Position numbers and translations under genes: made by a program. Of a DNA stretch of 64,000 bases, positions 24,462 through 48,260 are shown piece after piece. How positions within the stretch are numbered: position 1 is the first letter of the stretch; every line of letters starts with the position of its first letter. The notes beneath the pieces were generated by a model. The model was not told the origin of the DNA and did not search any database. It saw only the letters and a program-made list of their open reading frames with translations. The DNA comes from Macrostomum lignano (lineage: Eukaryota), in contig NIVC01003808.1 in NCBI GenBank assembly GCA_002269645.1, positions 1 to 64,000 of the forward strand, read 5' to 3'.

Positions 24462-25658
24462 TCACTTCTTCTTGGCGGTGAGACCTGCGCCAGCGTTGAA
24501 CTTGAAGAAGATAATATCCCCGTCCTGCACCACATAGTCCCTGCCCTTCTGCTTGTATTTGCCTTTGGCTTTCACCTCGCTCTCCGAGCCGCACTCTTTA
24601 TAATCTTCGAAGCTCATAACCTCGGCCATGATGAAGCCATTCTCCATGTCGGAGTGAATCTTGCCGGCAGCCTGAGGCGCTTTAGTATTTAGCGGAATTG
24701 TCCAAGCTTTCACTTCGTCTTTGCCGGCGGTAAAAAAGTACTGCAGCTGCAGAGCCTTGTAGCCGGTTGAGATGATTTTGCCCAGAGCCGAGCTCACCCC
24801 GTGCTCCTTAGAGAACTCAGCCCTCTGCTCATCGGTCATGTCCGCCCATTTAAACTCCAGCTCAGCGGACAGCGGGATCACTGCGGCTCCCGGATCGTGC
24901 TGGTCAATCCACTCCTTGATCTTTGGCAACCATTTGTTCTTCTTCCGAATGAAGTCCTTCTCGCTCAGGTTAACCAGGTACACGATTGGCTTAGCGGTGA
25001 TGAACAGGTGCTCGTTGAGCAAATCGATTTCTTTGTCATTCCACTGCTCGAACCGAAGCGACCGTTTCTCCTCGACAACGATCCGGTGCACCTTCTGGAA
25101 GGCTTCAAACAGCGCCGTTTTGGACTTGTCGCCGCCGCGGGTGACCACCTTCTCCAGCTTCTCAAACTCCTTCACAATGTAGGCCTCATCTTTCAGCCGG
25201 AGCTCCTCGGAGATGATTTCAAGATCGCGGATGGGATCTACTTCGCCTTCAATGTGGGTGACCTCCTGGCAGTCGAATGCGCGCACCATGTGGAACAGCG
25301 CGTCAACGCCGCGGATATTGCTAAGGAAAGCGTTGCCAAGGCCCTGGCCTTCGCTGGCGCCTTTAACTAGGCCTGCAATGTCCCAGACATTGAGATAGGC
25401 GGGCACCCTGCTGGCAGGCTTCCAGTGCTCGCACAGCCATTCCCACCTGTCGTCTGGCACAGCCACCCGGCTCTCGTGCGGATCAATAGTGCAAAATGGG
25501 AAATTCTCGGCCGGAGCCGAGCTCTTCGTCAGCACGTTGAAGAATGTACTTTTGCCAACGTTGGGCAGGCCGACAATGCCGATCTTGAGGTTGCTGCCCA
25601 TCCGGCCAATGATTGGCGGGTTTTTCGGCTCATCTGCTCCCTTCTTCTTTGGCGGCAT
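24462..25658 (-). CDS. OLA1: Obg-like ATPase 1 (YchF/OLA1), intronless CDS, 398 aa
   Basis: [16 protein letters not shown] (G1), NFPFCTIDP (G2), [17 protein letters not shown] (G3), YLVNLSE (OLA1-type G4), and TGS-domain C-terminus [15 protein letters not shown]...[11 protein letters not shown]. Confidence 0.97.
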
Positions 25659-25869: not shown

Positions 25870-26640
25870 AACCAGCAACTGAGGATCTGGGAGGCTGGCC
25901 CAGCAACTGAGAATCTGAGAGGCTGGCACAGCAACTGAGAATCTGGGAGGCTGGCACAGCAACTGACACTCTAGGAGGCTGGCCCAACAACTGGGGATCT
26001 GGGAGGCTGGCCCAGCATGTAAAGATCTGGGAGGCTGGCCCAGCATGTAAAGATCTGGGAGGCTGGCCCAGCATGTAAAGATCTGGGAGGCTGGCCCAGC
26101 ATGTAAAGATCTGGGAGGCTGGCCCAGCATGTAAAGATCTGGGAGGCTGGCCCAGCATGTAAAGATCTGGGAGGCTGGCCCAGCATGTAAAGATCTGGGA
26201 GGCTGGCCCAGCATGTAAAGATCTGGGAGGCTGGCCCAGCATGTAAAGATCTGGGAGGCTGGCCCAGCATGTAAAGATCTGGGAGGCTGGCCCAGCATGT
26301 AAAGATCTGGGAGGCTGGCCCAGCATGTAAAGATCTGGGAGGCTGGCCCAGCATGTAAAGATCTGGGAGGCTGGCCCAGCATGTAAAGATCTGGGAGGCT
26401 GGCCCAGCATGTAAAGATCTGGGAGGCTGGTCCAGCAACTGAGGATCTGGGAGGCTGGCCCAGAAACTGAGGATCTGGGAGGCTGGCCTAGCAACTGACA
26501 CTCTGGGAGGCTGGCCCAGCAACTGGGGATCTGGGAGGCTGGCCCAGCAACTAAGAATCTGGCCCAGCAACTGACACTCTGGGAGGCTGGCCCAGCAACT
26601 GGGAATCTGGCCCAGCAACTGAGGGGATCTGGGAGGCTGG
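25870..26640. repeat. 28-bp minisatellite GAGGCTGGCCCAGCA(TGTAAA/ACTGAG)GATCTGG
   Basis: Homogeneous central block of about 15 identical units. Confidence 0.95.
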
Positions 26641-27262
26641 CGGATTCTAATACTGTCACTCTGTCATGTCTATTCCTTTCAATCGTTAGATACAAAGCAG
26701 AAACTACGAGCAGAAATATTTGATTACAAACAGCAATTTTAATCAGACAGTTTATTATCCATTACACCAATTACTTGGATGATTCTTAGTTACAAAGATT
26801 ATGAAAGCTATGATAAGGTACCGGGTATATTAATGAAAGGAAGAGTAAGTATGTGATTACATCTAGCGACGCCTGCTGATAGGTGGACAGAGACAAAACA
26901 GGCGAATACAGCAAAACTATACTCAAAGAAACTAATTGTCTCAGAGCACCAAAGTGTCTCGGACGTCACCAATGTTTAAATTAATTTTGGCAACAATTTG
27001 ATTGGGAGTGAACAAATATAAAGCACACCCAAACATGGCTACTAATCTAGTAGTAAGCAGCGAGTTTAAAACACACATTAGAGAAAAAACTTGAATATTA
27101 CAAAGAAATGCCTTACAGAAGCAGTTTTGTGAATTTTGAATTTTTATAATTGAACGCATATGAATTGGGCTTCAACACACGGAAAACTTTGAGCAACAAT
27201 TTATCGAATAGAAACTGAACAGCAACAAGAGGAACGAGAACGCGCAGGCATCCGTATCGGGA

Positions 27263-30200
27263 TCAGGACCAATCTTCATCCGACAGCCAGTTCAATTGGA
27301 TGGCGTCCTGGCACAGGCTTGGCGGGTAGGTTTGGTATTGCAGCTCGCTTGATGGGTCCGCGTCTGCCAACGATCAATACTAATGAGCTAATAGCATGTC
27401 GCCTGGATGACACCATCCTGTTTCCTGTCTGCACCTGCTGCTTCCTGTCTGACACCATCCTGTTTCCTGTCTGCACCTTCTGCTTCCTGTCTGTCACCTG
27501 CTGTTTCCTGTCTGTCACCTGCTGTTTCCTGTCTGCCACCTGCTGTATCCTGTCTGCCTCCTGCTGTATCCTGTCTGCCTCCTGCTGTATCCTGTCTGTC
27601 ACCTGCTGTTTCCCGTCTGTCACCTGCTGTTTCCTGTCTGTCACCTGCTGTTTCCTGTCTGTCACCTGCTGTTTCCTGTCTGTCACCTGCTGTTTCCTGT
27701 CTGTCACCTGCTGTTTCCTGTCTGTCACCTGCTGTTTCCTGTCTGTCACCTGCTGTTTCCTGTCTGTCACCTGCTGTTTCCTGTCTGCCAGCTGCTGTTT
27801 CCTGTCTGCCTCCTGCTGTTCTGTCTTCCACTTGCTGTTTCCTGTCTACCATTATGCTTTTTCCTGTCTGCCACCTGCTGTTTCCTGTCTGTCACCTGCT
27901 ATTTCCTGTCTACCATTATGCTGTTTCCTGTCTGCCAGCTGCTGTTTCCTGTCTGCCTCCTGCTGTTCTGTCTTCCACTTGCTGTTTCCTGTCTACCATT
28001 ATGCTTTTTCCTGTCTGCCACCTGCTGTTTCCTGTCTGTCACCTGCTGTTTCCTGTCTACCATTATGCTGTTTCCTGTCTGCCAGCTGCTGTTTCCTGTC
28101 TGCCAGCTGCTGTTTCCTGTCTGCCATTATGCTGTTTCCTGTCTGTCACCTGCTGTTTCCTGTCTACCATTATGCTGTTCCCTGTCTGCCACCTGCTGTT
28201 CCCTGTCTGCCACCTGCTATTTCCTGTCTACCATTATGCTGTTTCCTGTCTACCATTATGCTGTTTCCTGTCTGCCAGCTGCTGTTTCCTGTCTGCCTCC
28301 TGCTGTTCTGTCTTCCACTTGCTGTTTCCTGTCTACCATTATGCTTTTTCCTGTCTGCCACCTGCTGTTTCCTGTCTGTCACCTGCTGTTTCCTGTCTAC
28401 CATTATGCTGTTTCCTGTCTGCCAGCTGCTGTTTCCTGTCTGCCAGCTGCTGTTTCCTGTCTGCCATTATGCTGTTTCCTGTCTGTCACCTGCTGTTTCC
28501 TGTCTACCATTATGCTGTTCCCTGTCTGCCACCTGCTGTTCCCTGTCTGCCACCTGCTGTTTCCTGTCTGCCTCCTGTAGTTTCCAATACATTCTAATTT
28601 TACGACTATCCTGATCCAACTGTTTCCACAGTGTAAATATACTTCAGGCAAATCATTACCGTCAGAGTAGAACGGCACCGAGGTCGACTTGAAATTGCCG
28701 CCGCCGCCGCCGCCGTCGTCGTACCTGGCCAGCAGCTGGCCGACTGTCGCCGTCTCGCAGCCGAACTCCGCCAGCCGGTGCCGCAGCTCGCCGCCAGCCT
28801 CAGCCTCGCCGCTGCAATCGTCCGGCACAAGCAGAAGAAATTCGCGGTGCCGGCAGCGCAGGCGGGTCTGCAATTCGGCGAGGCCGTCAACGCAGCCGAG
28901 CAGCCCGGCGCCGCCGGAGCCGCCTTCGCCAGGCAGCAGCGAGTCGACGGCCCAGCGGCTGGCCTCCAGCATCTCCAGACAGGCGGCCAGGCGCTGCCGC
29001 TCCGATTTGGCTTTCAACGAAGCGGCCGCGGATGCCCCGGCGGCTTCAGTCGCGGCATCTCGCAAACGGCGAAGGTCGCGAGCTCGAATCCCGATTGGCC
29101 AGCGGCTGTCGCGGCGGCCTGCGGCGGCTAACAGGCGGGTCAGGGTGTCCGGCTGGTAGCGCAGCGGGTCGCCAAGCAGCAGGCAGGGACCGCCGGTGAC
29201 GGGGAAAATTGGTTGGAGAGATGAGGCCAGCGATGAGGCTGAGCTGGAGGCTGGGGAAGTGGGAATAAACAATATGGATGTGGCAATCATAAATGTGTTC
29301 ATTATAGCTTAGTCTCAACTGGGAAGCTGGGAGGCTGGCCCAGCAACTGGGGATCTGGGAGGCTGGCCCAGCAACTGAGGATCTGGGAGGCTGGCCCAGC
29401 AACTGAGGATCTGGGAGGCTGGCCCAGCAACTGAGGATCTGGGAGGCTGGCCCAGCAACTGAGGGGAGCTGAGAGGCTGGCCCAGCAACTGAGGATCTGG
29501 GAGGCTGGCACAGCAACTGACACTCTGGGAGGCTGGCCTAGCAACTGACACTCTGGGAGGCTGGCCCAGCAACTGAGGGGAGCTGAGAGGCTGGCCCAGC
29601 AACTGAGGATCTGGGAGGCTGGCCCAGCAACTGAGGATCTGGGAGGCTGGCCCAGCAACTGAGGATCTGGGAGGCTGGCCCAGCAACTGAGGATCTGGGA
29701 GGCTGGCCCAGCAACTGAGGGGAGCTGAGAGGCTGGCCCAGCAACTGAGGATCTGGGAGGCTGGCACAGCAACTGACACTCTGGGAGGCTGGCCTAGCAA
29801 CTGACACTCTGGGAGGCTGGCCCAGCAACTGAGGGGAGCTGAGAGGCTGGCCCAGCAACTGAGGATCTGGGAGGCAGGCCCAGCAACTGACGCTTTGGGA
29901 GGCTGACCCTGAAATCGAAGATCTGGGAGGCTGGCCCAGCAACTGAGGATCTGGGAGGCTGGCCCAGCAACTGACACGCTGAGAGGCTGGCCCAGCAACT
30001 GAGGATCTGGGAGGCTGACCCTGAAACTGAGGATCTGGGAGGCTGGCCTAGCAACTAAGGATCAGGGAGGCTGGCCCAGCAACTGAGGATCAGGGAGGCT
30101 GGCCTAGCAACTAAGGATCAGGGAGGCTGGCCCAGCAACTGAGGATCTGGGAGGCTGGCCCAGCAACTGAGGATCAGGGAGGCTGGCCTAGCTACTGAGG

Positions 30201-33200
30201 ATCCCTATGAGCAGTCTCACCCGTAGCAGCGCAGGCAGCCGCCGCAGCCGCCCTGGCCTGCTCAAAAGCCAGAAATCGAACGTCGCGCCGTTTCCGAAGC
30301 TCCAGCAGGCCGGGCAGCTGCCAGGGCAACCTGTCCAGAGCGGAGGCGTGGGCGTACACCACGAGCTGCTGCTGCTGCTGCTGCTGCAGTTGCTGAATGC
30401 CATCCCGTCGGGGTCCACGGCACTGCAGCAGCAGGGAGGCGTGCAGCGGATCGCACTGCCGATGTCCGAGGCTGGTCAGGCGGCTGGCCAGATCTGCGCA
30501 CTCCGCACTGTCCGAGATGCCGACCACGTGGAAGAATGGCGGCGGTGGAGGAGGAGGCGGAGGCGGCGGCGGCACAATGGACTGCTGCTGTGGCTGCAGT
30601 AGCGCAGATAGCAGAGGAGTAGGATAGTACTAATTAGATGACGAGACATTTAGCCTTAATAATACAGTCATAGTTACTCCTGCTGTTTACCACAAAACTG
30701 CGTTAATTTTTGCTGAGGTTTCTTTTATAGGTAGGTCGCATTTTTGGTAAAAAAAAGTAAGTTTAAGTTCCATAGTTTCTGTAATCCATATCTCATTAGT
30801 AGTATTAAATAATTTTATAATTTTTGGGATTCTCGTGAGTTCACTTGAAAGGTCAAGGGTTCGATTCCTGATTCTACTCGAGAGTTCACCCAGCTGTAAA
30901 ATGGGTAACCAGCATTAGCTGGGGTAACTGAGGGTGTGAGTGGCGAACCCCCCAGTCCTTGGACTGAACAGCCGTACGCAGCCTTCAGATGCGACGATGC
31001 GCCACGCAATAGCTGCGGCTGAGCTGTAGGTTGCACATATGGCCCAATTGGGGCAGGTTTATCAATTATTAATATTATTATTTTGGACAGTCTTGGCCCA
31101 GCGGCTAGCAACTGACACTCTTCGAGGCTGGCCCAGCAACTGAGGATCTGGGAGGCTGACCCTGAAACTGAGGATCTGGGAGGCTGACCCTGAAACTGAG
31201 GATCTGGGAGGCTGACCCTGAAACTGAGGATCTGGGAGGCTGACCCTGAAACTGAGGATCTGGGAGGCTGACCCTGAAACTGAGGATCTGGGAGGCTGAC
31301 CCTGAAACTGAGGATCTGGGAGGCTGACCCTGAAACTGAGGATCTGGGAGGCTGACCCTGAAACTGAGGATCTGGGAGGCTGACCCTGAAACTGAGGATC
31401 TGGGAGGCTGGCTTAGCAACTAAGGATCAGGGAGGCTGGCTCAGCAACTGAGGATCAGGGAGGCTGGCCTAGCAACTAAGGATCAGGGAGGCTGGCCCAG
31501 CAATTGAGGATCAGGGAGGCTGGCCTAGTAACTAAGGATCAGGGAGGCTTAAATTTAAAATTCAAGACTGCTTATTAATTGTCAAACTTGAATAATCCGG
31601 ATTCTGCATTCTGCAACTATTGTGGTTCAGAAAAAGACTCAGCAGTGTTAAGGGTAGGGCAGAGAATTTATTGACTAGAAAAAAGGTTCAGACATACCGC
31701 ATGGCTGTAATAGGCGGCAAGGAAGCTGTGATCGATCGAGCCGGCTTGCCTAGCAACGGTTGCTAGGGCGGCGGACGCCCGCTGCTGCTGCTGCTGCTTA
31801 GCGACGGCCAGAGCGGCCAGCAGTCTGGTTTGCATCTGAGCGGACAGAGGCGGCGGCTGCTGCGGCTGAGACGGTGGCGCCTCATCGTCAAGGAAAGCAT
31901 CGGCCAGGCCAATCTTGTAGCTGCGGATCATCGCGTCCTGGCGTTCCCGATAGGTCAGCGCGGAGCCGCCCGCGGCCGGCTCAGCAGCGGCAGGCGGCGG
32001 CGGTGGCTGCTGCCGGGGCATTGCGAGCTGGGAATTATTGTGATGGAGATGAGGCGGTTCAGGCGACGGCCGGAGCCTGGGCGGCAAGCAGCCTGCAGCA
32101 GGGGGTAAGGAGATTGAAGCAGCTGGGAGCGTTGCGTGGGCACTGAAGGGCTTGCTAATCTAAGGGATAGAAATGAACTAACATGGATACATGTGGGCAG
32201 GTTATTAGGAAGACGCTGCTTATAGTAGTATTCGGGATTTCAGAACGCAAGTCTTCGTATAGGGGGTATTAAGAGATTTTTACTTAAAGTACCTTTACGA
32301 CTTTCGGTATTTACGTTGGGAGATTTTCGGAATCAGCTGTATTGCGGGGTTTTATGAATCAGCTGAATTGGGAGATTTTGGGAATTAGCTGAATTGGGAG
32401 ATTTTGGGAATCAGCTGAATTGGGAAATTTTGGGAATTAGCTGAATTCGGACTTTAGGAATTAGCTGAATTGGGGGACTTTGGGAATTAGCTGAATTGGG
32501 GGATTTTAGGTATGAGCTGAATTGGGAAATTTTTGGAATCAGCTAAAGTGGGAGATTTTGGGAAATTGTGTGAATTTGGGATATTTCGGGAATTAGCTTA
32601 ATTGGGGGATTTTGGGAATTAGGTGAATTGCACGAGGGGGGGTTCGGAATCAGCTGAATTATGAGATTTAGGAACAGTTGAGTTGGGAGATTTTGAGAAT
32701 CAGCTAAATAAGGTTTTTCCTTTAAAAATGAGTTAGTTTTTTAAATCAGAGCTGTGCCAACTCAGAACTCACACTTCTGCTGAGCAATGCTTCCAGCAGC
32801 GGCAGATTCGAAAAGAATATCGCTGGGCCACTGCAAACTGGGCGCCGGCGACAAAGGTCGACGCAGAACTTGCCGTTGACAGGCGGTCATCGTCCAGTCG
32901 GACAGACCCTTTGACAGACACCGGCTGGCCGAGAACCGCCTCGGTGGCAGTGGCGGCAGGGCTCCAATCGACGCCGCTGTCAAATTCGGCAAACAGCCGT
33001 CAGCGGCTCTTAGAAACCGGCGTGCAGTCGAGCGCAGTCGATGCCGCAGTCGACGAATTCGCCGACGAACAATCGAGCCAGACTTGGCGGCGCCGTCAAT
33101 CCCAGCGTCAACATCGTCGACTACATCGAACTTGTCAAAGCCGATGCTCACAGGACTGCCGACATTGCCGCCACCGCTGCCGCTGTTATCATCGCCGTCA

Positions 33201-36200
33201 AAATCGTCGTCGTCGCTTGTCAAAGACGCGGCCGCCGTCAGAGAGTCTGGATAGAGTTGGTTGATCGCCAACTGCTCGTTGCTAAGGACGCCACCGCCGC
33301 CCGCGTAGAAACCGTCCAGGTAGCGCAGTAGAGCGAAGCCGACGTTGCGAACGCTTCTTGAGCGACGCTTGGGGTCTGCGGTAAGGTCCGGAAATGTGGA
33401 CTGCCAGACTAGTGAAACATGGACTACCAGACTAGTGAAACATGGACTGCCAGACTAGTGAAACATGGATTGCAAGACTAGTGAAACATGGATTGCCAGA
33501 CTAGTGAAACATGGATTGCCAGACTAGTGAAACATGGATTGCCAGACTAGTGAAACATGGATTGCTAGACTAGGGAAATATGGATTGCTAGACTAGGGAA
33601 ATATGGATTGCTAGACTAGGGAAATATGGATTGCTAGACTAGGGAAATATGGATTGCTAGACTAGGGAAATATGGATTGCTAGACTAGGGAAATATGGAT
33701 TGCTAGACTAGGGAAATATGGATTGCTAGACTAGGGAAATATGGATTGCTAGACTAGGGAAATATGGATTGCTAGACTAGGGAAATATGGATTGCTAGAC
33801 TAGGGAAATATGGATTGCTAGACTAGGGAAATATGGATTGCTAGACTAGGGAAATATGGATTGCTAGACTAGGGAAATATGGATTGCTAGACTAGGGAAA
33901 TATGGATTGCTAGACTAGGGAAATATGGATTGCTAGACTAGGGAAATATGGATTGCTAGACTAGGGAAATATGGATTGCTAGACTAGGGAAATATGGATT
34001 GCTAGACTAGGGAAATATGGATTGCTAGACTAGGGAAATATGGATTGCTAGACTATTCAAACGACTATCAAAAGCTCGCCATACCGCCGCTATCCAACGT
34101 GCCCCGCTCCATCAGCCACTCGGTCAGGGCTGCCTGAGCGGTGCGGCCGAGCTGACGCCGCAGGTGTAGCGGCAGCGACTCCTCCAACAGGGCGGCGTTG
34201 GCCCGTCGTGTTAGTCGAGACGCCGCATCCACTGGCAGACGGCGAAGACGTCGACGTGGGGGAAAATGGCGAGACTGCTGAGAAGGCTGCGACTGGGATT
34301 CAGCTGGAATGGTGAGGTCAGCGTGGGTGAAAATTAAAGTGCAGATGCAGCAGCCGATTGACAATCCAACTATCAGAGTAGAGTGACAATCTGACTACAG
34401 AGTGACAATCTGACTATCAGAGTGACAATTTGACTATCAGAGTGACAATTCGACTACGAGAGTGACAATCTGACTATCAGAGTGACAATTTGACTATGAG
34501 AGTGACAATTTGACTATCAGAGTGACAATCTGACTATCAGAGTGACAATTTGACTATCAGTGACAATCTGACTATCAGAGTGACAATTCGACTATGAGAG
34601 TGACAATCTGACTATCAGAGTGACAATTTGACTATGAGAGTGACAATTTGACTATCAGAGTGACAATCTGACTATCAGAGTGACAATCTGACTATGAGAG
34701 TGACAATTCGACTATGAGAGTGACATCTGACTATCAGAGTGACAATTTGACTGTCAGAGTGACAATCTGACTATCAGAGTGACAATCTGACTATGAGAGT
34801 GACAATTTGACTATCAGAGTGACAATTTGACTATCAGAGTGACAATTTGACTATGAGAGTGCAGTTTGACTATCAGAGTGACAATCTGACTATCAGAGTG
34901 ACAATTTGACTATCAGAGTGACAATTTGACTATGAGAGTGACAATCCGACTATCAGAGTGACAATTCGACTATGAGAGTGACATCTGACTATCAGAGTGA
35001 GAATTTGACTATGAGAGTGACAATTTGACTGTCAGAGTGACAATCTGACTATCAGAGTGACAATCTGACTATCAGGACTAAAATCTGGTGAGTTTTAACT
35101 TCAATAGTATACACCTGGCGCATACCTGAGCAGTCGGCAGTGGACTGAGTATTATCCCGCAAAATGACGGCCAGATTCTGTTTAAAATCTGCCAGCGCCA
35201 ATTCAGCCTGGGATCTGTCACCGGAATCGGAAGCGATAGCAGCGCGACCCGAGCCGGCGGATTGGGCCAGGCCACGGCCAAGACGGCGAACTTCTGACAC
35301 CAGACTGGGCGACTTGGCGAGGCAGGTGGACAGCAGGCTGTCTGAAGAGGGTTAGGGTGATGCTGCAGATAAGCTTTCATGTGAGCAGTGAGGATCTGGG
35401 AGTGCGGCAGGTGGCCCAGCAACTGAGGATCTGGGAGTGCGGCAGGTGGCCCAGCAACTGAGGATCTGGGAGTGCGGCAGGTGGCCCAGCAACTGAGGAT
35501 CTGGGAGTGCGGCAGATGACCCAGCAACTGAGGATCTGGGAGTGCGGCAGCTGGCCCAGCAACCGAGGATCTGGGAGTGCGGCAAGTGGCCCAGCAACTG
35601 AGGATCTGGGAGTGCGGCAGATGACCCAGCAACTGAGGATCTGGGAGTGCGGCAGGTGACCCAGCAACTGAGGATCTGGGAGTGCGGCAGGTGGCCCAGC
35701 AACCCAGGATCTGGGAGTGCGGCAGGTGCTCAGCAACTGAGGATCTGGGAGTGCGGCAGGTGGCCCAGCAACTGAGGATCTGGGAGTGCGGCAGCTGGCT
35801 CAGCAACTGAGGATCTGGGAGTGCGGCAGGTGGCCCAGCAACTGAGGATCTGGGAGTGCGGCAGGTGACCCAGCAACTGAGGATCTGGGAGTGCGGCAGG
35901 TGGCCCAGCAACTGAGGATCTGGGAGTGTGGCAGCTGGCCCAGCAACTGAGGATCTGGGAGTGCGGCAGGTGACCCAGCAACTGAGGATCTGGGAGTGCG
36001 GCAGGTGGCCCAGCAACTGAGGATCTGGGAGTGTGGCAGCTGGCCCAGCAACTGAGGATCTGGGAGTGCGGCAGGTGGCCCAGCAACTGAGGATCTGGGA
36101 GTGCGGCAGGTGGCCCAGCAACTGAGGATCTGGGAGTGCGGCAGGTGGCCCAGCAACTGAGGATCTGGGAGTGCGGCAGGTGGCCCAGCAACTGAGGATC

Positions 36201-37292
36201 TGGGAGTGCGGCAGGTGACCCAGCAACTGAGGATCTGGGAGTGCGGCAGGTGGCCCAGCAACTGAGGATCTGGGAGTGTGGCAGCTGGCCCAGCAACTGA
36301 GGATCTGGGAGTGCGGCAGGTGACCCAGCAACTGAGGATCTGGGAGTGCGGCAGGTGGCCCAGCAACTGAGGATCTGGGAGTGTGGCAGCTGGCCCAGCA
36401 ACTGAGGATCTGGGAGGAATAAAAGTACTCAAAGTAGGCCACTCACCAACAGACGCAGGTAAGTCGATGCTGTCATCATCGGAGCCGCTGCTCACTTGAG
36501 CCTCCAAGTTGCACGCAGCGGTGAAGCGGTCGTCAATGAAGCTCTGCAGTTGGCTCACCGCTGTAGTTGGCGAAATTTCTGCATTGTTGAAAAAGTGAAA
36601 ATAAAGCAGTTGCAGCACCATTGTGTAGGAGAATCCATCTTAGATAAGTAGGGACCTGAGCGGAGTGAACTATAGCTCATTCGGTAAATATAGGGACCTG
36701 AGCGGAGTTAACTATTGCTCACTCGGTAAAAATAGGGACCTGAGCGGAGTACTGGCATAAATAGAACAATGCATTAAAACTACATATATTGAACACCTGC
36801 ATCTGTTCCATTGACTTCAGAAGCTTTATCAGCCGGTTTGCTGCTAGCAGATGCATTGGCAACAACAACAGCAGAAGCAGTATCAGAAGAGGCTGGCAAG
36901 CACCGCGTCAGAGCCACCTGAGTCTCCGATAGCAGACAATCTGCCAAATCGTCAAGCGATGAATCTCCATTTCCAGCATCCTCATTGCTGGCATTGTTAT
37001 TAAACTCCTCGGCGGCCTTGCAAACTTCATCAAGCTGCTTAGCTAGGCTAGCCAGATTCAGCTTAGCAATCTTGTCCACCGAGGCGCAAATGGCAGCTTC
37101 ACTGGGCTGCCCATCGCTAGATGACGGTGCCAGTTTCCGCTTCCGGTTGCCATTTCCCGTCTGGCTGGAACTGCCATCCAGGCCAGATTGGGTCAGCCGG
37201 TTCAAAAAGTTGGACACTTCATCGGCTGCTGTGGCCGAGGCTGCATCAACCTCGGGCATGTCCGGGCCATTGCCCAGCTTGGAGGTGAGCAT
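27263..37292 (-). CDS. 9-exon gene of about 1041 aa with a C-terminal TASOR/FAM208-like (PIN-like) domain and a low-complexity N-terminal part
   Basis: Exons 37292-36797, 36578-36447, 35341-35126, 34303-34085, 33375-32773, 32092-31698, 30593-30221, 29250-28660 and 27363-27263. All are GT-AG with concordant phases; total 3126 nt open. LTSLGHRQCDP...PWQLPGLLELRKRRDVRFLAF...IFPVTGG...SRWPIGIRARDLRRL...LAELQ...REFLLL...FGCETATVGQLL resembles the human TASOR C-terminal region as I recall it. The family call needs an HMM search, and the 5' end and last exon are less certain. Confidence 0.62.
27400..28580. repeat. 21-bp minisatellite CTGTTTCCTGTCTGTCACCTG with higher-order duplications
   Basis: Fills the last intron of the TASOR-like gene; source of the 396-431 aa C/S/L-rich artefact ORFs. 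Confidence 0.95.
29320..30200. repeat. 28-bp minisatellite GAGGATCTGGGAGGCTGGCCCAGCAACT
   Basis: About 30 units, intronic. Confidence 0.95.
30825..31083 (+). mobile_element. Probable tRNA-derived SINE (5'-degenerate)
   Basis: Pol III B-box GGTTCGATTCC at 30858-30868, then CACCCAGCTGTAAAATGGGTAACC resembling conserved SINE central domains (recalled, not searched), and an (ATT)n-like tail at about 31065-31083. No A-box or TSD seen. Confidence 0.55.
31100..31550. repeat. 28-bp minisatellite variant GAGGATCTGGGAGGCTGACCCTGAAACT
   Basis: About 16 units of the same family as 29320-30200. Confidence 0.94.
32330..32710. repeat. Degenerate ~25-bp repeat (GGGAATTAGCTGAATTGGG core)
   Basis: Intronic tandem units. 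Confidence 0.85.
33395..34055. repeat. 23-bp minisatellite GACTAGGGAAATATGGATTGCTA
   Basis: About 28 units, mostly identical, intronic. Confidence 0.96.
34375..35075. repeat. 20-bp minisatellite AGAGTGACAATTTGACTATC
   Basis: About 35 units, intronic. Confidence 0.95.
35385..36415. repeat. 35-bp minisatellite GAGGATCTGGGAGTGCGGCAGGTGGCCCAGCAACT
   Basis: About 29 units; a 7-nt-longer variant of the 28-bp family. Confidence 0.96.
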
Positions 37293-38258
37293 GTGACAGC
37301 TGCTGCTGTTTGACTCTCGAGTTGCAGGTGAAAGTTTTAATAAATTGATTGACTTGGCACTGGGAGAGCAAAAGTTGCAGCATAAATGCAGCAGCAAGTA
37401 ATTCAATACAATTGTGAAAATATACAACCCTTTAGATTCAATTTAGCAGCTATAAGGAGGAAACTGTCAGAGTCAGATGCAGATAAACATTGATTTTAAG
37501 TATTTCTTTATTGCAGAATTTTCTACAGCTTCTATAATACTTTATGAAGATAGGAAATTTTAAAAAGCAATTTAGTGCTAAGTGATACCTGATTTTGAAG
37601 AGGCTTAGTGTGTATAGATTTCTATTAAATATACCTAGACTATTGTGATAATATCTTTAAGATTTGTGCCATTTAAATAAATGCCAATTCATCAAATTAA
37701 CACTATCAAAATTTTGGCTTTCTAAAAAATTAGGCTGCAACAAAAGTTTTGAGCATTTTTGAGCATTTTGAGCACCCTATCCATAGCCCATAGTCCAGAT
37801 CATGGCAGGCGTAGGCTGGAATGAAAATTCATGTTTTTTAAATTTTATGCTGACATAAAATAAAAAATTTTTCACACCAAGACTAAAATTGTTTATATGC
37901 CATTTTTTCAAAGCATATATATTTTTAGGAATTCAAAACTTTTATTTAACTTTAAAATGGCTGTTTTTTGCTAAAAACTGAATATTGTTTGTTTTAATTT
38001 GGCCTTTCTTATAATTTTACGTTATTATTTTCAATTTTAGTTTGCAATTATTTTTAAAGAGCTTTCAATGTTGGTTGATATTTAACTACACAATTACACT
38101 AGCCTTGAACTTGGCTATTTTTGTATGCCGACTGTGTACACTTCATGTCAAACCTGAAAATTCTATATGCCAAGTGTATGCCAAGATTGTCAGCGAGACC
38201 AAAAATATGCCGGAAAATTCTGGCGAAAAGGCCACCTTCGAATGAGTATAACTTTGGC

Positions 38259-39245
38259 TGTCAACTTTTCTATCAACTATTCCATTAACTTTCTGTCAAC
38301 TATTCCATTAAATTTTCCATCAACTTTTCTGTCAACTATTTCATGAACAATTATGCAAGTCTGTTAACTAGATTCCATCAAATTTTCTGTGTACTCTGAA
38401 TGGAAAGTGATATTTTTCTGTATAAGTGCAGACTTTTCCTTTGCAATTTTTTATGCATGCTTAAATTGGTTGAGTATTTATGTATATGTATAAATTATAA
38501 ATAAATAACACACATGCAATTTTTTTTTCGTGTGACATACATGTTCCAGAATTTAAATGGTATTGCTGCACTATTTGCACTATATCTGCACTTGTTTTAT
38601 CGATTCATCTTTGGTAACTAGGGTAAATGGAAAAGATGCACATTTTTACTAATGTAGGCTTGTTTTTTCATTGATATATAAGCATACAAACAGTCAATAA
38701 ATGAGCAAAGAGCTACTCGCATGATGATCCTATTTGACAAAGTCACATGTTTTTCCAAACATTAAATTGCACTTTAATGAATGCATTTAAAGTGCAACAC
38801 TATACTTTTTTTAATTAAATACATAGGTTGCTAGAATTTTGCCCATCCCCTAAAAAAATATTGAAAGAGTTCTAATCAAATTATTTTTGCTTAATTGAAG
38901 TACAATAAACATGTCCTGCTAACAGTTAACTACATATGCTCACACAAGGACTTCTAGATTTACTAGACCAACTAGTTAGTCTAGAAGTCCTTGTGCTTAC
39001 AATTTACAAATAAAAATAACATTAATGTTTGAGCTTGGATGTCATACAGAATTATTTCACAAAAGTTGATAGATAAAGTTGAAGGAAAAGTTGACAGAAA
39101 AGTTAACAGAGAAGTTTATAGAAAAGTTGATGGAAGAGCTGACAGAAAAGTTGACAGATAAAGTTGTGTACCCTACTTATAGGAAAAGTTGATGGAAAAG
39201 TTAACAGAAAAGTTAATGGAAAAGCTGAAAGAAAAGTTGTTGGCC
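38259..39245. repeat. Oppositely oriented arrays of a ~12-13 bp motif (TGTCAACTTTTC at 38259-38345 and GAAAAGTTGACA at 39060-39245); foldback-like relic
   Basis: The motif arrays are reverse complements of each other; no clear termini or TSD. Confidence 0.5.
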
Positions 39246-42200
39246 AAAGTTATATTTGTACCTTCCTGACTATGTCCCATACCACAGGGCCTAGTCCAGA
39301 TCATGCTGGGTGCATGCCTGAACAAAAATTGAATAATTACAAATGCACACCAGAAAAAAATGTAGTGCATGCCCATTCTAAAAAATATGCCAGTGTTGCA
39401 ACAATAAATGACCTTTTTTACGTTGTGACAATAAAATACTTTTTTTTTAAATTAGGCCTACATAATAGACCCCTATTACTCTATTACCAAATAATTTGGT
39501 TGCTTTTTATGCTTTTTTGGCAATACTATTTATAGCAGAAAATTTAAACACTCAAAGATTTGTTTAAATACCCTTTTAAGAGCTTGAAAAAACTGGAAAG
39601 CTTGAAATTTGCACTTAAAAATGAATTTTTTTATCTTTTTTCTACTTCACAATAACTTTTACACGTGATTCTATAAAGTTCACACTAGGTATGCACGCAC
39701 ACTATCTTCTCAGGAATGATGCACATTGCACGCCAACTGTGCACGCCTAATTTTGGCATGTAAGGCCAATGCACACCCAAATTTTTGGGCATATACTACA
39801 TGATCCAGAGTGTGGGTCCCATCCCATAGCCATAGGCATAGGGTCTTACTTTTAGGGATATAGACTAGAAAAAACTTTTTAAAATATATTTAGATATTAG
39901 TATATAATAAATTCTTGTCTTAAAAATTTTTAAAACTACAAAAACTTTTAAGTTTATACCAACAAAAAACCCAATGTAGGCTTTATATTTGACAAGTCAT
40001 ACCTCATAGGACCCCCACCCCACTAAAGTCCCTATGCCAGGTAACAAAAATCATGACATGATGCCAATTGATGGTTATGCTGATGCCTATGAGGACTAAA
40101 AAGTGGTTTGGCAAAAAATTAAAGATTCAGACCTAAAGATTTTAAAGACCTAGGCCTAGTCAAAGCAAAGAAACTAGTATAGGTCTAGTTCAATTTAATG
40201 CACTGGATATCTATGTAATTAAAAGGAAGTTGTTTGATTGGCGATTACACTAGGCCTACTGACTAGGTTAGCCTAACATGTTAGACGAAGTGTTTAACTT
40301 CGTTGAAAAATGAAACTCTCCATAACTAGAGGGAGATACGTGCTATAAAGTTTTTATTATTGAATGACAATCGCCAAGAAGAAAGTGAAAGATTGTGCTA
40401 AGTTAGGTTGTTAAGGCAGTCAAATATTAACAGAGTTTAATATTTATACCGCTGTTTTTCTTGGAATTCCGAACCGATTCTGGTTCTGGAATTGGTAATG
40501 TGAAAAGGCCCATTGAGAGATTCCCCGCGCTCTTTAACCTGGCGAAAATGATGTTTTTAAGTTCCTTCATGATGACTCACTCGTTATTTCACGATGTTTT
40601 TTTATAATATATTATAAATGCACTTTTCATTACAATTTTGCTCTTCAAAAGTCTATGCTCTTACCTTTTAGTATTGCAATGGCCGCCCTAACTTTATAAC
40701 TTAAGAGGAATCAATCTTCATTCGTCCAAATAAACTGCATACCAGTTTAATATAGTATTCGTTTCTTCTTGAAGCCAAAATCTTATTTAGAGCCTACGTT
40801 ATATTTTAATTGCAGATACATAAAGACTAAAGATTATGTATATTTATGTTATTTTCTAGTAATCGTGCATACATGTTTATTGGCCAATCGTCCTAAAGAG
40901 CCTAAAAATAACTATAAAAATTAGGTTACTTACTTTCTTATGTATTTATAATTTATCATTTTGCAAGAGCTGCACCTGATATTAAAAAACGTATTCATTC
41001 ACGCATTTGCATGTAGCTACTCCAAAAAAAGCACATTCTGACAATTGCATTCGGAAAGATTCGCGTATACCGAAACCTATACATTTAAAGTATAAGTATA
41101 GGCTGAAGCCTATAGTGTCGTATACAACCAAAGTATAAGTTCTAGTTAAACACATAGGTTGTAATAAAAATTTCAAGGTAGAACAGTTGAAAAATACTGA
41201 AACATTTTTGAGATAAAACGATTAATTTTTTAAGAAGTTATATTAGTTTGTTTAAACTGAATAAGAAAGTTTAAAATACCAACTGATTTCCTGGAATGTT
41301 CAGCCCGCGCTGGGAACGGTCGAACGAAGTGTCAGTGTCAGCAAATGCTGAAAATGCTGATTGCATCGGCAGCACTTTTGCACTTTAGCTACCTAAGGAT
41401 TATTGATACTTGAAAATGAATTGATAAAAGAATTTACTAATTTAAGAAATGTATATTGTTTTATACATTTAGTTTAAAATGTATTAAATTGCTTCTTACA
41501 ATTTTATTTCTAATAGAAATTTTCTATGCTATGTCACGTATCTGACTGATGTTCCGATGGAATGGTATCAATAAAACATTGTCATTAATTGGCCTGGTTG
41601 GCTCTCTTATATTACCTCATCTTAGATCCTATCTTATTTCACTTAAAACTAAAAGCGCTATACTTGTCAAACTATTTCCAATTGCCAATTAGAATTAGAT
41701 TGATTTAAAAATGCAATATAATAGAAATCAGGTAAAGTAGCTTGCTTGGCAAATAAAATAAAAAAAAATCCAAAAATCAACATGTGGTTTTTTCACACAC
41801 CAAGGTGCATTGTCAGGTATATTGTTTGAGACAAAAGGTGTGAGTAAGCAAATTTATAAATTATTTGTCAATGAAACGTATGTTAGTATGTAGCTGGTGA
41901 GTAAGTATTTTGTTTATTATAGCTTTGTATTTTGTTTCATAGCTGGTGAGTCACCCACCCTTAATACGCAACTCCAACACAGTGGTTCAGGCCATGTTTT
42001 TCGATTCCAGGTATTCTTAGTAAGAGAGCATTGACCTTGTTGTAACCACTGCTCACTCAATTATATTTTGTTTTCTACCTATTGGACATAGTCAGGAAGG
42101 TGTCCAGTGTATGCAAGAACTAATTCTGGGCAAAATTTAGCCTGTACGCCAATGTACGCCAATTTTTTTAGCTTCATTTCGAACATTACGCTGTACACTG

Positions 42201-42731
42201 AAGTCCTTTTTCCGTATTTGAAATTGGATTTTACGAAAGAATGGACTACTTTATTGCATGCAACAATTTAAAAAAGTTGAAAACAGAAACAAATAAAACA
42301 ATTCTTTTTTCACAAAAGTGCAAAATAACAATCTTTAGAAATAGTTTTCCATTATCTGCTTACTTTTTATTATTCTTTAATTTTTTCAATGGCCATAAAT
42401 CAACAAAGACATATGATACAATGCAAATAAGATTGAATATGATTTGTAAAAAAGGTCACTGTGCAATTGCTTACGTATATGGACAGTGATTATGATGCCG
42501 CCAGTAAAATTGGTACACTGATTTTGTCGTTCTGTTGTGTGTATACGCAGATACGCAAGTTTTCTAAAGATCTATATGCTGAAACTGATTCTAACGGCCA
42601 AGTGTATGCGGGATTATTCCTGCGTACGGACACCTTCCTGACTATGGCCTATTGGTCTTTGCCTTGCCTTGCCCTATGGACTATTAACCTCCTATTACTC
42701 TGTACATACAAAATACTTACTCACTAGCTAC

Positions 42732-43475
42732 TGTGACAGGCCTTTTGGCTCTGTCTTTCTAAACTTCTAACTATTAGTGTTTATTAAATATCCTACGAGC
42801 TGCCACCAAAGTTGTTACAGGCCTTTCACCTCTTACTTTATCAATTTTAATCCCACCGATTTGCCAACTACAGTTATCCTGATTATACTTGCTTTTACTC
42901 CCTAACTATTTCTTAGAATTTCATTTAAATATTTCTGGGTAGCGTTCTTAGTAGCGTTTCTGGTAGCTTATGGCTTGCTTTCTGGTAGCGTTCTAGTAGC
43001 TTATGGCCTGAGCGGTCTAGTACTGGTATATGTATTAGTGTATAGTCCTAATCGGGCGTTCACCGAGACTAGAGGGTCACGGCGCCTCTCTTGGTATATC
43101 TCCAAGAATTAGTCCCAATTCCCTTCTCTTAGCAAATTTCTTAGAATCGTTTCACAGGTTTTGCAAATAAATAAGTCGCTATTTAGCTCAAAGACTTTGA
43201 AATGGTTTAGATTGAACTGCTTATTCTGTTCGCAATTATTTGCTCACGAGTAAAAGACAGTTAGAGTATATTTGTCGCGAAACCGCTCCTATATATAGTG
43301 ATTTCCCCCACATACGATTAAAACAAAAAAATAATTCTCCAATTTATTTCACGCATTAAAACAAACTATTATTTGGCGTTCGCGTAGATTCAGTTTCTAA
43401 GAAAGATTCAAATATACAGTTATTACATTGAAAGAACATTTGAGTATACTATGATAAAGGCATAGCACTAGTACA
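42732..43475 (-). repeat. 3' LTR (744 bp)
   Basis: Near-identical to 49581-50324; preceded on the minus strand by the PPT AGAGGAGGAAAGT (43488-43476). Confidence 0.95.
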
Positions 43476-43761
43476 ACTTTCCTCCTCTATATATCAAATT
43501 TTGAACGAAATACTATATTATATGTATACAGTGAAAAATTGATATCGTAGGAAAATGTAGGTGAAAAGGTGCAAAGCAAGGTGCAGAAAACACAATTCAG
43601 TGCTAAAACAATTGGTGCATAAAATGGTTGTGATAGAACTATTATGTAGGTAAACCATTAAAGTGAGAACTATTATGGAAGCAAAACGAACTATTATAAA
43701 AGTATTATAAAAGGCAAAATTGTTATTAAAGGCAACGCAAAAGTTAGTTCACCTCAATAGT

Positions 43762-46700
43762 TCAGATAAACATGCAGGGCTCCGGGAGGTCGCGATAGTA
43801 GGGCCAGCCGACTTGAGCGAAAAACCATCGGTACTCTTCGTCGAGGACCGTCAGCGCTGGCGGCGGGTTGGCTCTTATAGCTCGCTGGAGGCGATAGGCG
43901 ACGTCCTGGAGAACAGCGACAGCTTCCTGGTAACTGAATTGATCCCTTAGAAACTTCAGGTGTGTCCAAATTTGCGAGCATTGGGGGTAGCGCTGTCGGC
44001 TGTCGGATAGGGGGCGACCCAGTCCCGGGCCCGGGCCCGAAAAGTCGGGAATCCCGACCAAAATCGTGGCCCGACCCGGGCCCGGGCCCGAACCTAAAAA
44101 AGTCGGGAAATCGGGACAAGTCTTTTTTCCCTAAAGGCACTAACCGCGTGCGAATAAGAAAAAATTATTTTTCAACACATTCACACTAATTTACCCTTAA
44201 TTCCAGCCCCAGGAAAATGCAACTGCAACTGCAAGGCATGACTGCATGAGGCATCTCTGTCTCTGGTCGGTCACTGACCTCACCTCGACCTCACCTGACC
44301 TGACTGTGAGCGGTCTGTGATTCTATGAAGCTGTCGGTCACTCACTGTCACTGGTGACTGGTGTCAGTCAAGCTCAAGCCTGTCTGCCCTGCCCCGGCTG
44401 TCCGTGAAGTTCGGTGATGTCTGGTGCTGCTCCCATCCCGATTCCCGATGTCCAGTCCAGGTCCAGGCTGCCAAGTCCGAGTGCCGATGCCGACTCCCGT
44501 TCCCGTTCCGTCACCGTCCTGAGTCTTGGACAGCTGGACTCCTGTCCTGAGTCCTGACTCCCACTCGAGCTTGAGTCAAGTAACCCACTCACTTAACTAA
44601 ACAGTCAGATTCGAATTTTCGAGTGTACATGTACGACAATAAAATTACATACTGTTCAAAATTGATGATACATATCATACAATATACATACAATATAGAT
44701 ATATGTATATATATATATATGTAATACTGATAGACTGATAGTGATATCATATCTGATACCGATTTATTGAAATTGACATCGTAAAAGATTACTGACTTCT
44801 GAGTTTTGACTTTTTCCTTTTTTATCACTTTCGTTTCGTCTGGACTCCTGGAGTGGAGAAGAGAAGTTGAGTGGAGGCCGAGGCCCGAGGGTGGACTGGA
44901 CTGGACTTTGAACTTTCTGGGCTCGTGGAGTGGAGTCGTGTCGTGTCTGAGGCGTGAGTCGTGACTTGTGACTGATTCGTGATTCGCGAGTTTTGTTTTG
45001 ACCGTGACGGTGACTCGTGATTGTGTAGTGACTCGTGAGTCGTGATCGTGACTCCGTAAGTGATGGACTACAGACGGAGTGCTAAAAATCACTGCTAGGC
45101 TAGTGCTATAAGTATCGAGTAATTATTACTGTCACTTTCGTTAGAATTATACAGTGTAGTGTAGTGTACTCTAATCAATAATCATTTCATCGTCATCCGT
45201 CATGTCAGGTCAGTGGTCAGGACTCAGGACTCAGGATCAGGACAGCACAACACTCAGTTAAGCATCGCATCAGTAATAGTAATAGATTTAGTATATTTAG
45301 ATGATATGATGTGAAGTAGCAATATCATTGATTCGTAGTAGGCTCTTAGCGTGAGCGTCTGTGACCGTGAGCGTCAGCCACAGCCAGTTTCCACTTTCCA
45401 GGAAGATCGGATTTTTTTCCAGGAAGATAAAATTAAAACATAGTTTTGCAATACTTTTTTGCAATATTGATTCCACTTTACACGCTGCAGGCTGCAGCCT
45501 AAAAGCAAAAATATGATTCTTTAAAAAGTTTATTTGTCATTTTTAAGCTTTTGTAAATAACATTTCCTATTTACATTCCAAGAAGGCTACCATTTTTCCA
45601 AGAAGTTTGCTATCTATTAGAGTTTGTAATCGTGTTCATATTTGTATCGTAGGTAGTCGTAGTCGTAGACTTGTAGTATCGTATTCGTAATCATATTCGT
45701 TTAAGTAGGTAGGTGAGCAGGTAGGCAGGTATCAGCTAATTACTTGTATTTCCATTGTCTGTTTGCCTGTTCTGTTGAGACAGTTGAGTGTTGTGTTGTG
45801 TTGTCACTTCACTTGTGTTCTGTTCTGTTATCTTGTCTTGTTGTCTTACTGAATACTGACTGTGTACATGGCTCTTTACATTGAAGCTATGTAAAGGATC
45901 TAAAAATTCAAATAAAAGAATCAATCAATTGATTTGGTTCTTACTTCCTTACTGCTTCCTATGCCAAGTGCCTTATACTTAATGCTTCAGCTTTTCTTCT
46001 TTTGCTTACTGCCACTGCCAGTGCCAGCCGCACTGCCGCAGTGACTGCTTGCCTACCTCACTGCTTGTTAGTATCACTGTCACTGGCACACACACAGTAC
46101 TTGTGCCACACACTCACACAGTGACATTGAATTTGAACTATTGAGTATATTGATATTTGAGTATTAAGTCTTTTAATGTAACTCTTATCTTATTCTGAAG
46201 TCTTAACTAATGTATTAAATAATAATAATATTTATTGTATATTTATTATATTTAAATTTAAATATTTATTATATTTAATATAATATATTATATTTATTAT
46301 ATTTATATATTATTATATATTTAATATATTTATATATTATAATATATTTAATGTTTATCATATATTTATTATACCTTTAATATATTATATTAAATTTAAT
46401 ATATTGATATATTTATTATATATTTAATAGTAATCCGCATATGCTAAAAGTATTAAGATTTATTATGATTTTTTTCCAATTATTGAGCTGTCCTAAAGAT
46501 CTTGTCCCGAATTCCCGAGGCCCGACCCGGGCCCGAGTCCTCATTCCCGGGCCCGACTTTGGCCGTCCCGGTCGCCCCCTACTGTCGGATCGGTGGTACG
46601 CTACTTTCAGTGCGTATTGCTCAATGTGGAAGCGTAGCTTTTCCACCTCTGCTCCGCGAGTCTCCACAAGTTCTCGGACGATGCGATGAAAATCTCTCTG

Positions 46701-47218
46701 CGAATTCGATTGCTGCTGGCTCGGCTGTAGTGCTGATGGCTGGCTAGACTGCTGCGCTGATTGCAGGCTCGGCTGCAACGCTGACTGCTGCGCTGATTGC
46801 AGGCTCGGCTGCGACGCTGGCTGCTGAGCTGGCGGTGTCGCAGCTGTCGATTTCTTCTGCCGTGGTGCCGGGGTCTTTCTCGATGATGGGGCAGCTGGCG
46901 GTGACACCAACTGCTGCGTTCGGCTTGATGTCGACGATCCTGGCGTGGCCTTGACAACATAGGAGCGCACGGGCGCAGCTGCCTGTGCTGCCACCAGGGC
47001 GGCGCGCTTCTGCTCGGGCCTTCGACCCTCATTTGGCGGCAAGGCGATGAAGCTGGCGATGATGTTCTTGGCCGTTTGCTGGATACACCAGGCGCCTTTG
47101 GACGTGTTGCACATCGAAGCGGTGCCTCATTTTCGTCGGTGTTGGGCGCTGGCTGGGGCTCCATATCGTCTGACAGATTGCCAATTAACTCGTCCAAGAT
47201 ATCAATAGAGTTGTTCAT
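43762..47218 (-). pseudogene. Accessory ORF of the LTR element, unknown function, split by the hAT insertion and probably frameshifted near 47000
   Basis: Removing 44008-46581 plus one TSD joins ...ALKVAYHRSD|SRQRYPQCSQIW...PEPCMFI* in frame, giving 256 aa from ATG 47114. An upstream ATG at 47218 (CAAAATG) starts in another frame. Confidence 0.7.
44008..46581. mobile_element. Non-autonomous hAT-like DNA transposon, 2574 bp
   Basis: Perfect 12-bp TIRs TAGGGGGCGACC (44008-44019 and 46570-46581), perfect 8-bp TSD CTGTCGGA (44000-44007 and 46582-46589), subterminal CCCGGG/TCGGG motif clusters at both ends; no transposase ORF. Confidence 0.92.
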
Positions 47219-47301
47219 TTTGATTTCTCTGCGAATGGCTCTTAGAATAGAAAGGAAGCTAGCAGTGAGCTATGGGATCTGTGGGGCCTGCAGGGTGCTC
47301 G

Positions 47302-47369
47302 TATTTATAGGCTGGCGGGCCGAAAAACTGGACCTCTTCGAAGCACTCCCCTCGCGCGTGGGGCGGGGC
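47302..47369 (-). promoter_or_regulatory. Candidate internal Pol II promoter: TATAAATA (47309-47302) and GC box GGGGCGGGGC (47360-47369)
   Basis: The TATA box lies about 85 nt upstream of ATG 47218 and the GC box about 50 nt further upstream. Confidence 0.5.
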
Positions 47370-47619
47370 ATGCCAGATTTGACAGATTTGACAACTAAAT
47401 TTTTATGGATTTTCTATTTCTTTTTATAACTTTTTTTATTTTTTGATAGATTTTCTTGAGTAAAGTATCAAATTAAAGATCGCATTTTGTAGATTAATAT
47501 GGTATTTACAGATTCGCTCTATGTACAGCATGTCAAATTTTATAAGCAGATAAGTAATTTTAATACGGAATTTTAACTATTTAACACTGTTTCTTATGGG
47601 AAATTGCTTACGTCATGAT

Positions 47620-48260
47620 TTAAGGTGCTAAATATTTCGCGTAGCGCCTTCGGGGCACAAATCCTGTCGCGCCTTCTCTTTCTCTCCTTCGCTGAGTCAT
47701 CCTAAAGTTATACCTATTCTCTGGCTGAACTCGTTCCTCCTCTAACTCTAATGCTCCTTCTTCTTCTTCTGATGGCTCATCTGAGTCAGTCGCTCTCTCT
47801 GTATTCTCACTGTTCAATTCTTCATTTCCTTCGTTTTCACTCTGCGAATTCGGATCTGCGAATACTCTCCATTGAATTCTGTTTTCTTCGTCTGAGCTTT
47901 CCTCCTCTAAAATTTGAACTTCTGGAATTCTAACTTCTTTTTGTCTATGGCAAATTCTTTTCTTCGGCTTCGGCTGTTCCTTCTTCTTAGTTGACACTAT
48001 TGCTGGTTCTAAATTATCATTATTAATTTCTTCTGGTAAATCAATTTCGGATTTCGGCACTGGAGTCAGATTATTACTGTTTTTCTTCGAACAATTTTGC
48101 AAATTCTCACAGCTTCTCTTCGAAATCTCATCTTCATTTTATCTCATCTCAACTCAACAACTTCTCGACTCAATATCTCAACTCGACCCTGACCTCTCGA
48201 AAGCTTCTCTGCTGAACTCATGCCAGCTACAGCTCTACTGTCACGGGTCCTACAACTCTT
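47620..48260 (-). pseudogene. Possible remnant of integrase C-terminal tail
   Basis: Acidic disordered ORF ending ...ENRYNFR... and an upstream RVVGPVTVEL fragment with stops, reminiscent of the GPY/F region. This is inference only. Confidence 0.35.

Follow-up and report, generated by a model that had tools for sequence, protein, structure and literature searches.

A predicted nine-exon flatworm gene whose C-terminal exons resemble part of the TASOR DomII–PIN module

The window analyzed here, a 64,000-nt stretch of Macrostomum lignano DNA (assembly GCA_002269645.1, contig NIVC01003808.1, positions 1 to 64,000, to which all coordinates refer), carries on its minus strand the g4 copy of the gene Mlig025502. 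In the public annotation, which we take to be built from assembled transcripts, its product is PAA49707.1 (P0024; ‘hypothetical protein BOX15_Mlig025502g4, partial’, 593 aa). Spliced reconstruction from a start at 37361, through exons 1–5 and an acceptor at 32029–32028, to a TGA stop at 31983–31981 reproduced PAA49707.1 exactly. An initial annotation, made from the letters of the window alone, had instead proposed nine phase-concordant exons encoding a protein with a C-terminus like that of TASOR, a component of the human silencing hub (HUSH). The features of the two models are the following.

37361–37360, minus strand: AG acceptor before exon 1, sequence cttttgctctcccag followed by TGCC
37359–36797, minus strand: exon 1, identical to the start of annotated PAA49707.1
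37292–37290, minus strand: first in-frame ATG, within exon 1
36578–36447, minus strand: exon 2, contained in PAA49707.1
35341–35126, minus strand: exon 3, contained in PAA49707.1
34303–34085, minus strand: exon 4, contained in PAA49707.1
33375–32773, minus strand: exon 5, contained in PAA49707.1, donor gtgagt
32092–31698, minus strand: exon 6 of the nine-exon model, acceptor AG at 32094–32093, donor gtatgt
32029–32028, minus strand: alternative acceptor AG, 65 nt downstream of 32094–32093, shifting the frame
32027–31981, minus strand: short last coding segment of the annotated product, stop TGA at 31983–31981
30593–30221, minus strand: exon 7, a poly-Pro stretch followed by a domain like the alpha/beta domain (DomII) of TASOR
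30533–30258, minus strand: core match to PF23314 within exon 7, residues 708–799 of the 1041-aa protein
29250–28660, minus strand: exon 8, a candidate degenerate PIN-like region followed by a Gly run
about 29240–28715, minus strand: part of exon 8 in colinear MAFFT alignment with the TASOR PIN region
27363–27263, minus strand: exon 9, stop TGA at 27265–27263, kept in both sister loci (L002 and L003)

An AG acceptor precedes each of the nine exons and a GT donor follows each of exons 1–8. Once joined, the exons read as one uninterrupted frame, 1063 codons in length or 1041 aa counted from the first Met; no exon contains an internal stop in this frame, whereas, exon 3 aside, stops interrupt both other frames of each exon. 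Base composition by codon position was strongly periodic in exon 6 (p = 1e-6), exon 7 (p = 4e-7) and exon 8 (p = 7.5e-6), and the GC content of second codon positions (GC2) lay well under that of first and third positions (GC1 and GC3), as in the neighboring OLA1 gene. The introns tested lacked codon periodicity, except for one built from a 21-bp minisatellite, a unit length divisible by three. Across exon 6, the proposed frame contains no stops, compared to three and seven in the other two, and this signature persists over the 283 nt beyond the annotated stop (zero versus three and four stops; periodicity p = 1.7e-4). A strong phase-0 donor, gtatgt, closes exon 6, and exon 7 opens on a codon boundary. 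Two syntenic, near-identical sister loci in the same assembly, g1 on NIVC01001403.1 (L002) and g6 on NIVC01000006.1 (L003), have kept the nine exons intact, together with every splice site and the full frame of 1063 codons, at an exon identity of ~99.7% among the three loci. The nine phase-concordant exons initially proposed were thus confirmed by their AG/GT borders, their one continuous frame and their integrity in two further loci.

Two independent predictions made on an older assembly bear on the 3′ part of the model: A0A1I8HAZ4 (P0002) matches the exon 7/8 junction exactly, and A0A1I8FQ82 (P0001), although ridden with frameshifts, links exons 5 to 8. Because the periodic tail of exon 6 is free of stops, exons 6 and 7 fit in phase 0 and the older predictions span these junctions, we consider it likely, on the evidence of the sequence, that the long nine-exon isoform is made. 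The single-gene model is plausible and, in our estimate, rather probable, though the only annotated coding sequence (CDS) contradicts it. The older fragments bear UniRef names (‘Nuclear receptor domain-containing protein’, ‘Adenylate kinase’ and ‘Fibrous sheath-interacting protein 1’, for P0001, P0002 and P0027), and Pfam found none of the domains so named in A0A1I8FQ82 or PAA49707.1. Exon 6 itself can be opened by two candidate acceptors 65 nt apart (window 31981–32094). Should the transcript continue, the annotated stop would precede three further introns, the layout of a regulatory isoform or of one prone to nonsense-mediated decay (NMD).

Among 24,736 Pfam models scanned with the whole protein, TASOR_alpha-beta (PF23314) was the sole family matched (E = 0.15, 12.6 bits). 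The isolated 97-residue exon 7 domain, cut out after this first match had been seen and as one of nine segments tested, reached E = 3.8e-4 and 21.0 bits over profile positions 6–82 of 95, compared to a curated gathering cut-off of 27 bits. Neither the reversed domain nor any of nine shuffled versions matched PF23314 (0/10; best stray E = 0.057).

All direct comparisons with TASOR were run on a real TASOR reference of 289 aa (P0003), in which PF23314 is followed by PF24630 (PIN_TASOR). It had been retrieved with a TASOR C-terminal seed, itself checked against Pfam; the listing gives 100% identity along the full query, and the printed sequences show one I/V difference. Against the alpha/beta part of this reference, exon 7 scored z = 6.3–6.6, and its local alignment score was reached by only one of 3000 shuffles. 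With a small hidden Markov model (HMM) built from vertebrate TASOR fragments, exon 7 outscored 1000 of 1000 shuffles, and BLASTP aligned the tail of the flatworm protein colinearly with P0003 over 204 residues (E = 0.005). The motifs that had first suggested a relationship are genuine on both sides: LGHRQCDP, QLPGLLELRK..VRFLAF, IFPVTGG, RW.I.IR and ELQ...R.FLLL all occur in exons 7 and 8, and P0003 has LGNTECHP, KIPGLVTLKK, VSFAG, LFVSGG, KWQWKVH and RLQAQNIQQRH.VFL, in line with the TASOR motifs quoted in the initial annotation. From these scores, we judge that exon 7 quite probably encodes a domain of the TASOR DomII type.

For exon 8, an end-free global alignment with P0003 gave z = 3.3–4.4 in five of six parameter settings, compared to –0.8 to 0.7 in ten controls that included reversed sequences, swapped domains, OLA1, adducin and the protein's own N-terminus. 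MAFFT placed the tail and TASOR in colinear register to the end, e.g. at C..L..LQ....RH..FL and G...AT...[LF][LM]..[YF], and the DomII-like part precedes the candidate PIN-like one, as in TASOR. The resulting PIN-likeness of exon 8 is weak. What stood of the TASOR-like C-terminus initially claimed is therefore a colinear likeness above chance, whose significant part is the DomII-like domain of exon 7 and not the PIN-like region to which the initial annotation had assigned it; the PIN portion came without a profile match.

The remainder of the protein matches its first description as domain-less and devoid of a pseudo-PARP or SPOC part, at the level of Pfam and for the protein as modeled. In the 687 residues preceding exon 7, Pfam matched nothing but noise at E ≤ 10. 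Neither the complete protein nor four N-terminal segments matched pseudo-PARP (DUF3715/RDTS) in Pfam at this same E-value limit, PAA49707.1 gave no such match either, and SPOC returned none in the whole protein or its N-terminal segments. Likewise, nothing was recognizable by Pfam as DomI, which binds MPP8, or as the Periphilin-binding linker, parts for which we know of no dedicated model. Ala, Ser, Pro and Arg abound in the N-terminal ~690 residues, and basic clusters, among them RKRK (residues 50–53), would make a nuclear location plausible.

With respect to the 5′ end, the annotated 5′-partial CDS opens at 37361 in this locus and at the matching place in both sister loci, 2 nt upstream of exon 1. 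The region at 38–43 kb is AT-rich and without long open reading frames (ORFs), and five minus-strand ORFs further upstream in the window had no Pfam match. In M. lignano, ~30% of genes are trans-spliced to a 35-nt spliced leader that ends in ATG; trans-splice sites are enriched in a YTNCAG motif, and operons whose spacers are filled with repeats are frequent (PMC8629364). Given the annotated CDS start, the AT-rich, ORF-poor upstream region and this frequency of trans-splicing, the acceptor at 37361–37360 is best read as a trans-splice site, and it probably marks the 5′ end of the mature mRNA and not the edge of an upstream exon that was missed. The acceptor from which further upstream exons had been suspected is thus present, but the suspicion is largely answered by the CDS start and the AT-rich upstream sequence. 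At exon 1, the leader AUG is out of frame and would open an upstream ORF of 38 codons.

To account for these observations, we propose that the Mlig025502 mRNA would be capped by spliced-leader trans-splicing at the 37361–37360 acceptor, and that a long isoform using the acceptor at 32094–32093 and all nine exons would encode a 1041-aa protein. In this product, ~690 domain-less N-terminal residues would be followed by a globular C-terminal module sharing an ancestor with the DomII (alpha/beta) and PIN domains of TASOR and fission yeast Chp1, with exon 8 perhaps folding as the PIN-like domain. By analogy with TASOR and Chp1, this module might act as a non-catalytic docking surface in a chromatin or RNA silencing assembly and not as an enzyme; a role in repeat silencing is likewise suggested by analogy. 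For the whole of this explanation, from one trans-spliced gene to a docking role of the tail, we see an even chance.

A number of observations weigh against it, and they are considered here together with the alternatives on which they bear. The first alternative divides the locus into two products: the short annotated protein (exons 1–5 plus 44 nt, 570 aa from Met), and exons 7–9 as either its untranslated, NMD-prone tail or a separate gene in an operon. The annotation contains the 593-aa product only, with the different acceptor at 32029–32028 and an end at 31981; the sister loci are each annotated with the 593-aa product too, PAA49707.1 and both of its paralogues end at the alternative-acceptor stop, and exons 7–9 are without annotated CDS in all three loci. 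In the operon version, trans-splicing at the exon 7 acceptor would supply the AUG of the spliced leader as the start of a stand-alone DomII/PIN-like protein: joined at 30593, this AUG is in frame with exons 7–9 and opens a 355-aa ORF. Exon 7 lacks a Met of its own and starts on a codon boundary, its acceptor ctgcag fits YTNCAG, and the frequent repeat-filled operon spacers of this species (PMC8629364) are in line with such an arrangement. The in-frame leader AUG at a Met-less exon thus keeps a two-gene, operon-type arrangement alive. However, the coding signature of exon 6 runs on for 283 nt past the annotated stop, its strong phase-0 donor fits exon 7, a leader AUG would be in frame by chance in one of three cases, and no gene is annotated over exons 7–9 either. 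A division into two products therefore strikes us as doubtful, albeit with a share of the probability that is far from negligible.

A second alternative accepts the gene as real and takes its C-terminus for a GC-rich, Ala/Leu/Arg-rich, lineage-specific sequence whose likeness to TASOR is coincidental. The scores are indeed sub-threshold: 21 bits against PF23314 falls below the gathering cut-off of 27, hhalign of the tail with a shallow, TASOR-only alignment gave E = 0.071, and even the BLASTP value is no better than E = 0.005; moreover, the exon 7 domain was isolated with the first match already known and with nine segments tried. In exon 8, Pfam PIN_TASOR (PF24630) found no match, the local alignment with the TASOR PIN region scored at chance, and the small vertebrate-only HMM, itself too shallow, gave no signal. 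An exhaustive phmmer search of the C-terminus against 1.84 billion representatives retrieved at E ≤ 0.001 no TASOR and no relative outside M. lignano, its only matches being two predictions from this species. Word-index homology searches with the C-terminus and the whole protein were dominated by low complexity, and among the matches listed were only M. lignano self-matches. A sequence search of the PDB, which contains no TASOR DomII/PIN chain, returned nothing relevant for the protein, and nothing for a pseudo-query assembled from the motifs of the initial annotation. Structural confirmation is lacking as well: AlphaFold2 models were poor, with a predicted local distance difference test (pLDDT) of 38.5 from the single sequence and 48.9 from a six-row alignment; only the exon 7 domain was moderately confident (pLDDT 57–76), with beta-alpha-beta elements. 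Foldseek found nothing in the PDB at E < 1 with a model too poor for this to count. Nor can purifying selection (dN/dS) be assessed across the three loci, because their exons are ~99.7% identical.

Against a coincidence, PF23314 was the sole family matched even with the whole protein as query, and three differently built tests agree on exon 7. Reversed, shuffled and unrelated-protein controls stayed at background, and the weaker signal of exon 8 appears in the correct order and orientation. We therefore regard a purely lineage-specific C-terminus as unlikely.

That exons 7–9 are GC-rich intronic or intergenic DNA open by chance is extremely improbable: exons 6–8 do reach up to 70% GC (68–70% in exons 7–8), high GC alone lengthens random ORFs, ORFs occur on the opposite strand too and no CDS is annotated there, but the periodicity of exons 7 and 8 is found in the proposed frame only, GC2 behaves as in OLA1, the splice sites are consistent in phase, and the Pfam signal has no counterpart in the opposite-strand ORFs of the exon region, none of which matched Pfam.

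If the preferred reading of a single gene with a TASOR/Chp1-type tail holds, the closest comparison is human TASOR (FAM208A), in which residues 1233–1466 were assigned to DomII and PIN via yeast Chp1 (PMC7532188). In both proteins, an alpha/beta domain precedes a PIN-type region, in the flatworm protein a candidate one, and the two close a long and mostly disordered chain at its C-terminus. Positions common to the two include F-[HY]-[VI], LG...C.P, [IL]PGL[VL].L[KR]K, V.F, F.V[ST]GG (the first-strand motif), [RK]W, C..L..LQ....RH..FL and G...AT. In contrast, identity is only ~17–21%, PF24630 finds no match in the flatworm protein, and poly-Q, poly-A/S and poly-G insertions interrupt its module. 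The flatworm protein also has no detectable pseudo-PARP/DUF3715, SPOC or DomI, the parts associated with HUSH activity and MPP8 binding. In human TASOR, DUF3715, SPOC and DomI are essential for repression of a HUSH reporter, and DomII/PIN is dispensable (PMC7532188). With these essential N-terminal parts undetected, it would be wrong to classify the protein as an orthologue of TASOR or as a subunit of HUSH; a diverged version of the TASOR C-terminal module is the most that it carries.

Invertebrate TASOR-like proteins have been defined by the series DUF3715–SPOC–DomI, the full architecture being reported in vertebrates (PMC10578480). Like these, the Mlig025502 product would come from an animal outside the vertebrates and be akin to one portion of TASOR; unlike them, with their N-terminal domains, it has the opposite, C-terminal half only. 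Published surveys of non-vertebrate TASOR relatives were anchored on the N-terminal DUF3715 (PMC10578480), and with only the C-terminal half present the flatworm protein would be invisible to them. Chp1 of S. pombe, a member of the RITS complex (for RNA-induced transcriptional silencing), has SPOC, DomII and PIN in its C-terminal half and would contain the same ancient module if the flatworm module is homologous to that of TASOR. The flatworm protein differs from Chp1 in having no chromodomain or SPOC, and its sequence showed no direct detectable similarity to any PDB chain. According to work cited in PMC7532188, the PIN domain of Chp1 is required for silencing of subtelomeres and dispensable for that of centromeres.

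A bolder possibility is that the DomII–PIN module survives in this flatworm as the globular tail of a rapidly evolving protein without pseudo-PARP, SPOC and DomI, or even as the 355-aa stand-alone product of the leader AUG, and acts autonomously in repeat or transposon silencing within an exceptionally minisatellite-rich genome. We consider this improbable; if true, it would point to an ancient C-terminal function that vertebrate HUSH reporter assays miss. A flatworm protein with the C-terminal module only would further imply that the module predates vertebrates within animals and can be separated from TASOR's other parts. The role of DomII/PIN would then also become testable in M. lignano, for which RNA interference and transgenesis exist. 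At present, with a remote homology below threshold and a predicted isoform, the value of the locus is that of a lead, a modest evolutionary curiosity and not evidence of a HUSH complex.

Outside the exons, the main features are the following.

27364–36796: eight introns within this span, seven of them largely minisatellite arrays with units of 20–35 bp
24462–25658, minus strand: single-exon OLA1-type gene, the downstream neighbor

In intron 1 alone, no array passed the score threshold. Among the three loci, the arrays vary in length by hundreds to 2000 bp, as opposed to the ~99.7% identity of the exons. A related 28-bp unit (CAACTGAGGATCTGGGAGGCTGGCCCAG) is shared by introns 6 and 7 and by a stretch downstream of the gene, beside OLA1 (25884–26641), and a 35-bp variant of the minisatellite unit fills intron 2. 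In the non-repeat part of intron 6 (~30830–31000), the plus-strand reading resembles a tRNA T-arm (GGTCAAGGGTTCGATTCC), which suggests a remnant of a tRNA-derived short interspersed nuclear element. ARAGORN and Rfam (gathering threshold) lent no support to this stretch; run on the whole window and on 26–46 kb, respectively, they returned no match.

The other neighbors of the gene are an Arf/Ras-like GTPase, an actin-family gene, an aspartyl protease and an adducin/class II aldolase gene. The whole neighborhood, comprising the Mlig025502 gene, OLA1 and the Arf-like GTPase, exists in three near-identical syntenic copies within the assembly, and the OLA1 product is annotated with 398 aa in two of them and 413 aa in the third. 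A search of the supplementary data of PMC5816591 for Mlig025502 did not find it. Further upstream (46416–49479, minus strand) lie several ORFs of 160–230 aa, either Ser/Pro/Gln-rich or Glu-rich, none with a Pfam match; one carries a C..C......H....C-like motif near its end, and together they might be a further orphan gene or the decayed remains of a mobile element. Directly upstream of the Mlig025502 gene, an AT-rich stretch of ~6 kb without long ORFs (38000–43700) has a GC content of 31–37%, compared to 52–70% in the exons of the gene.

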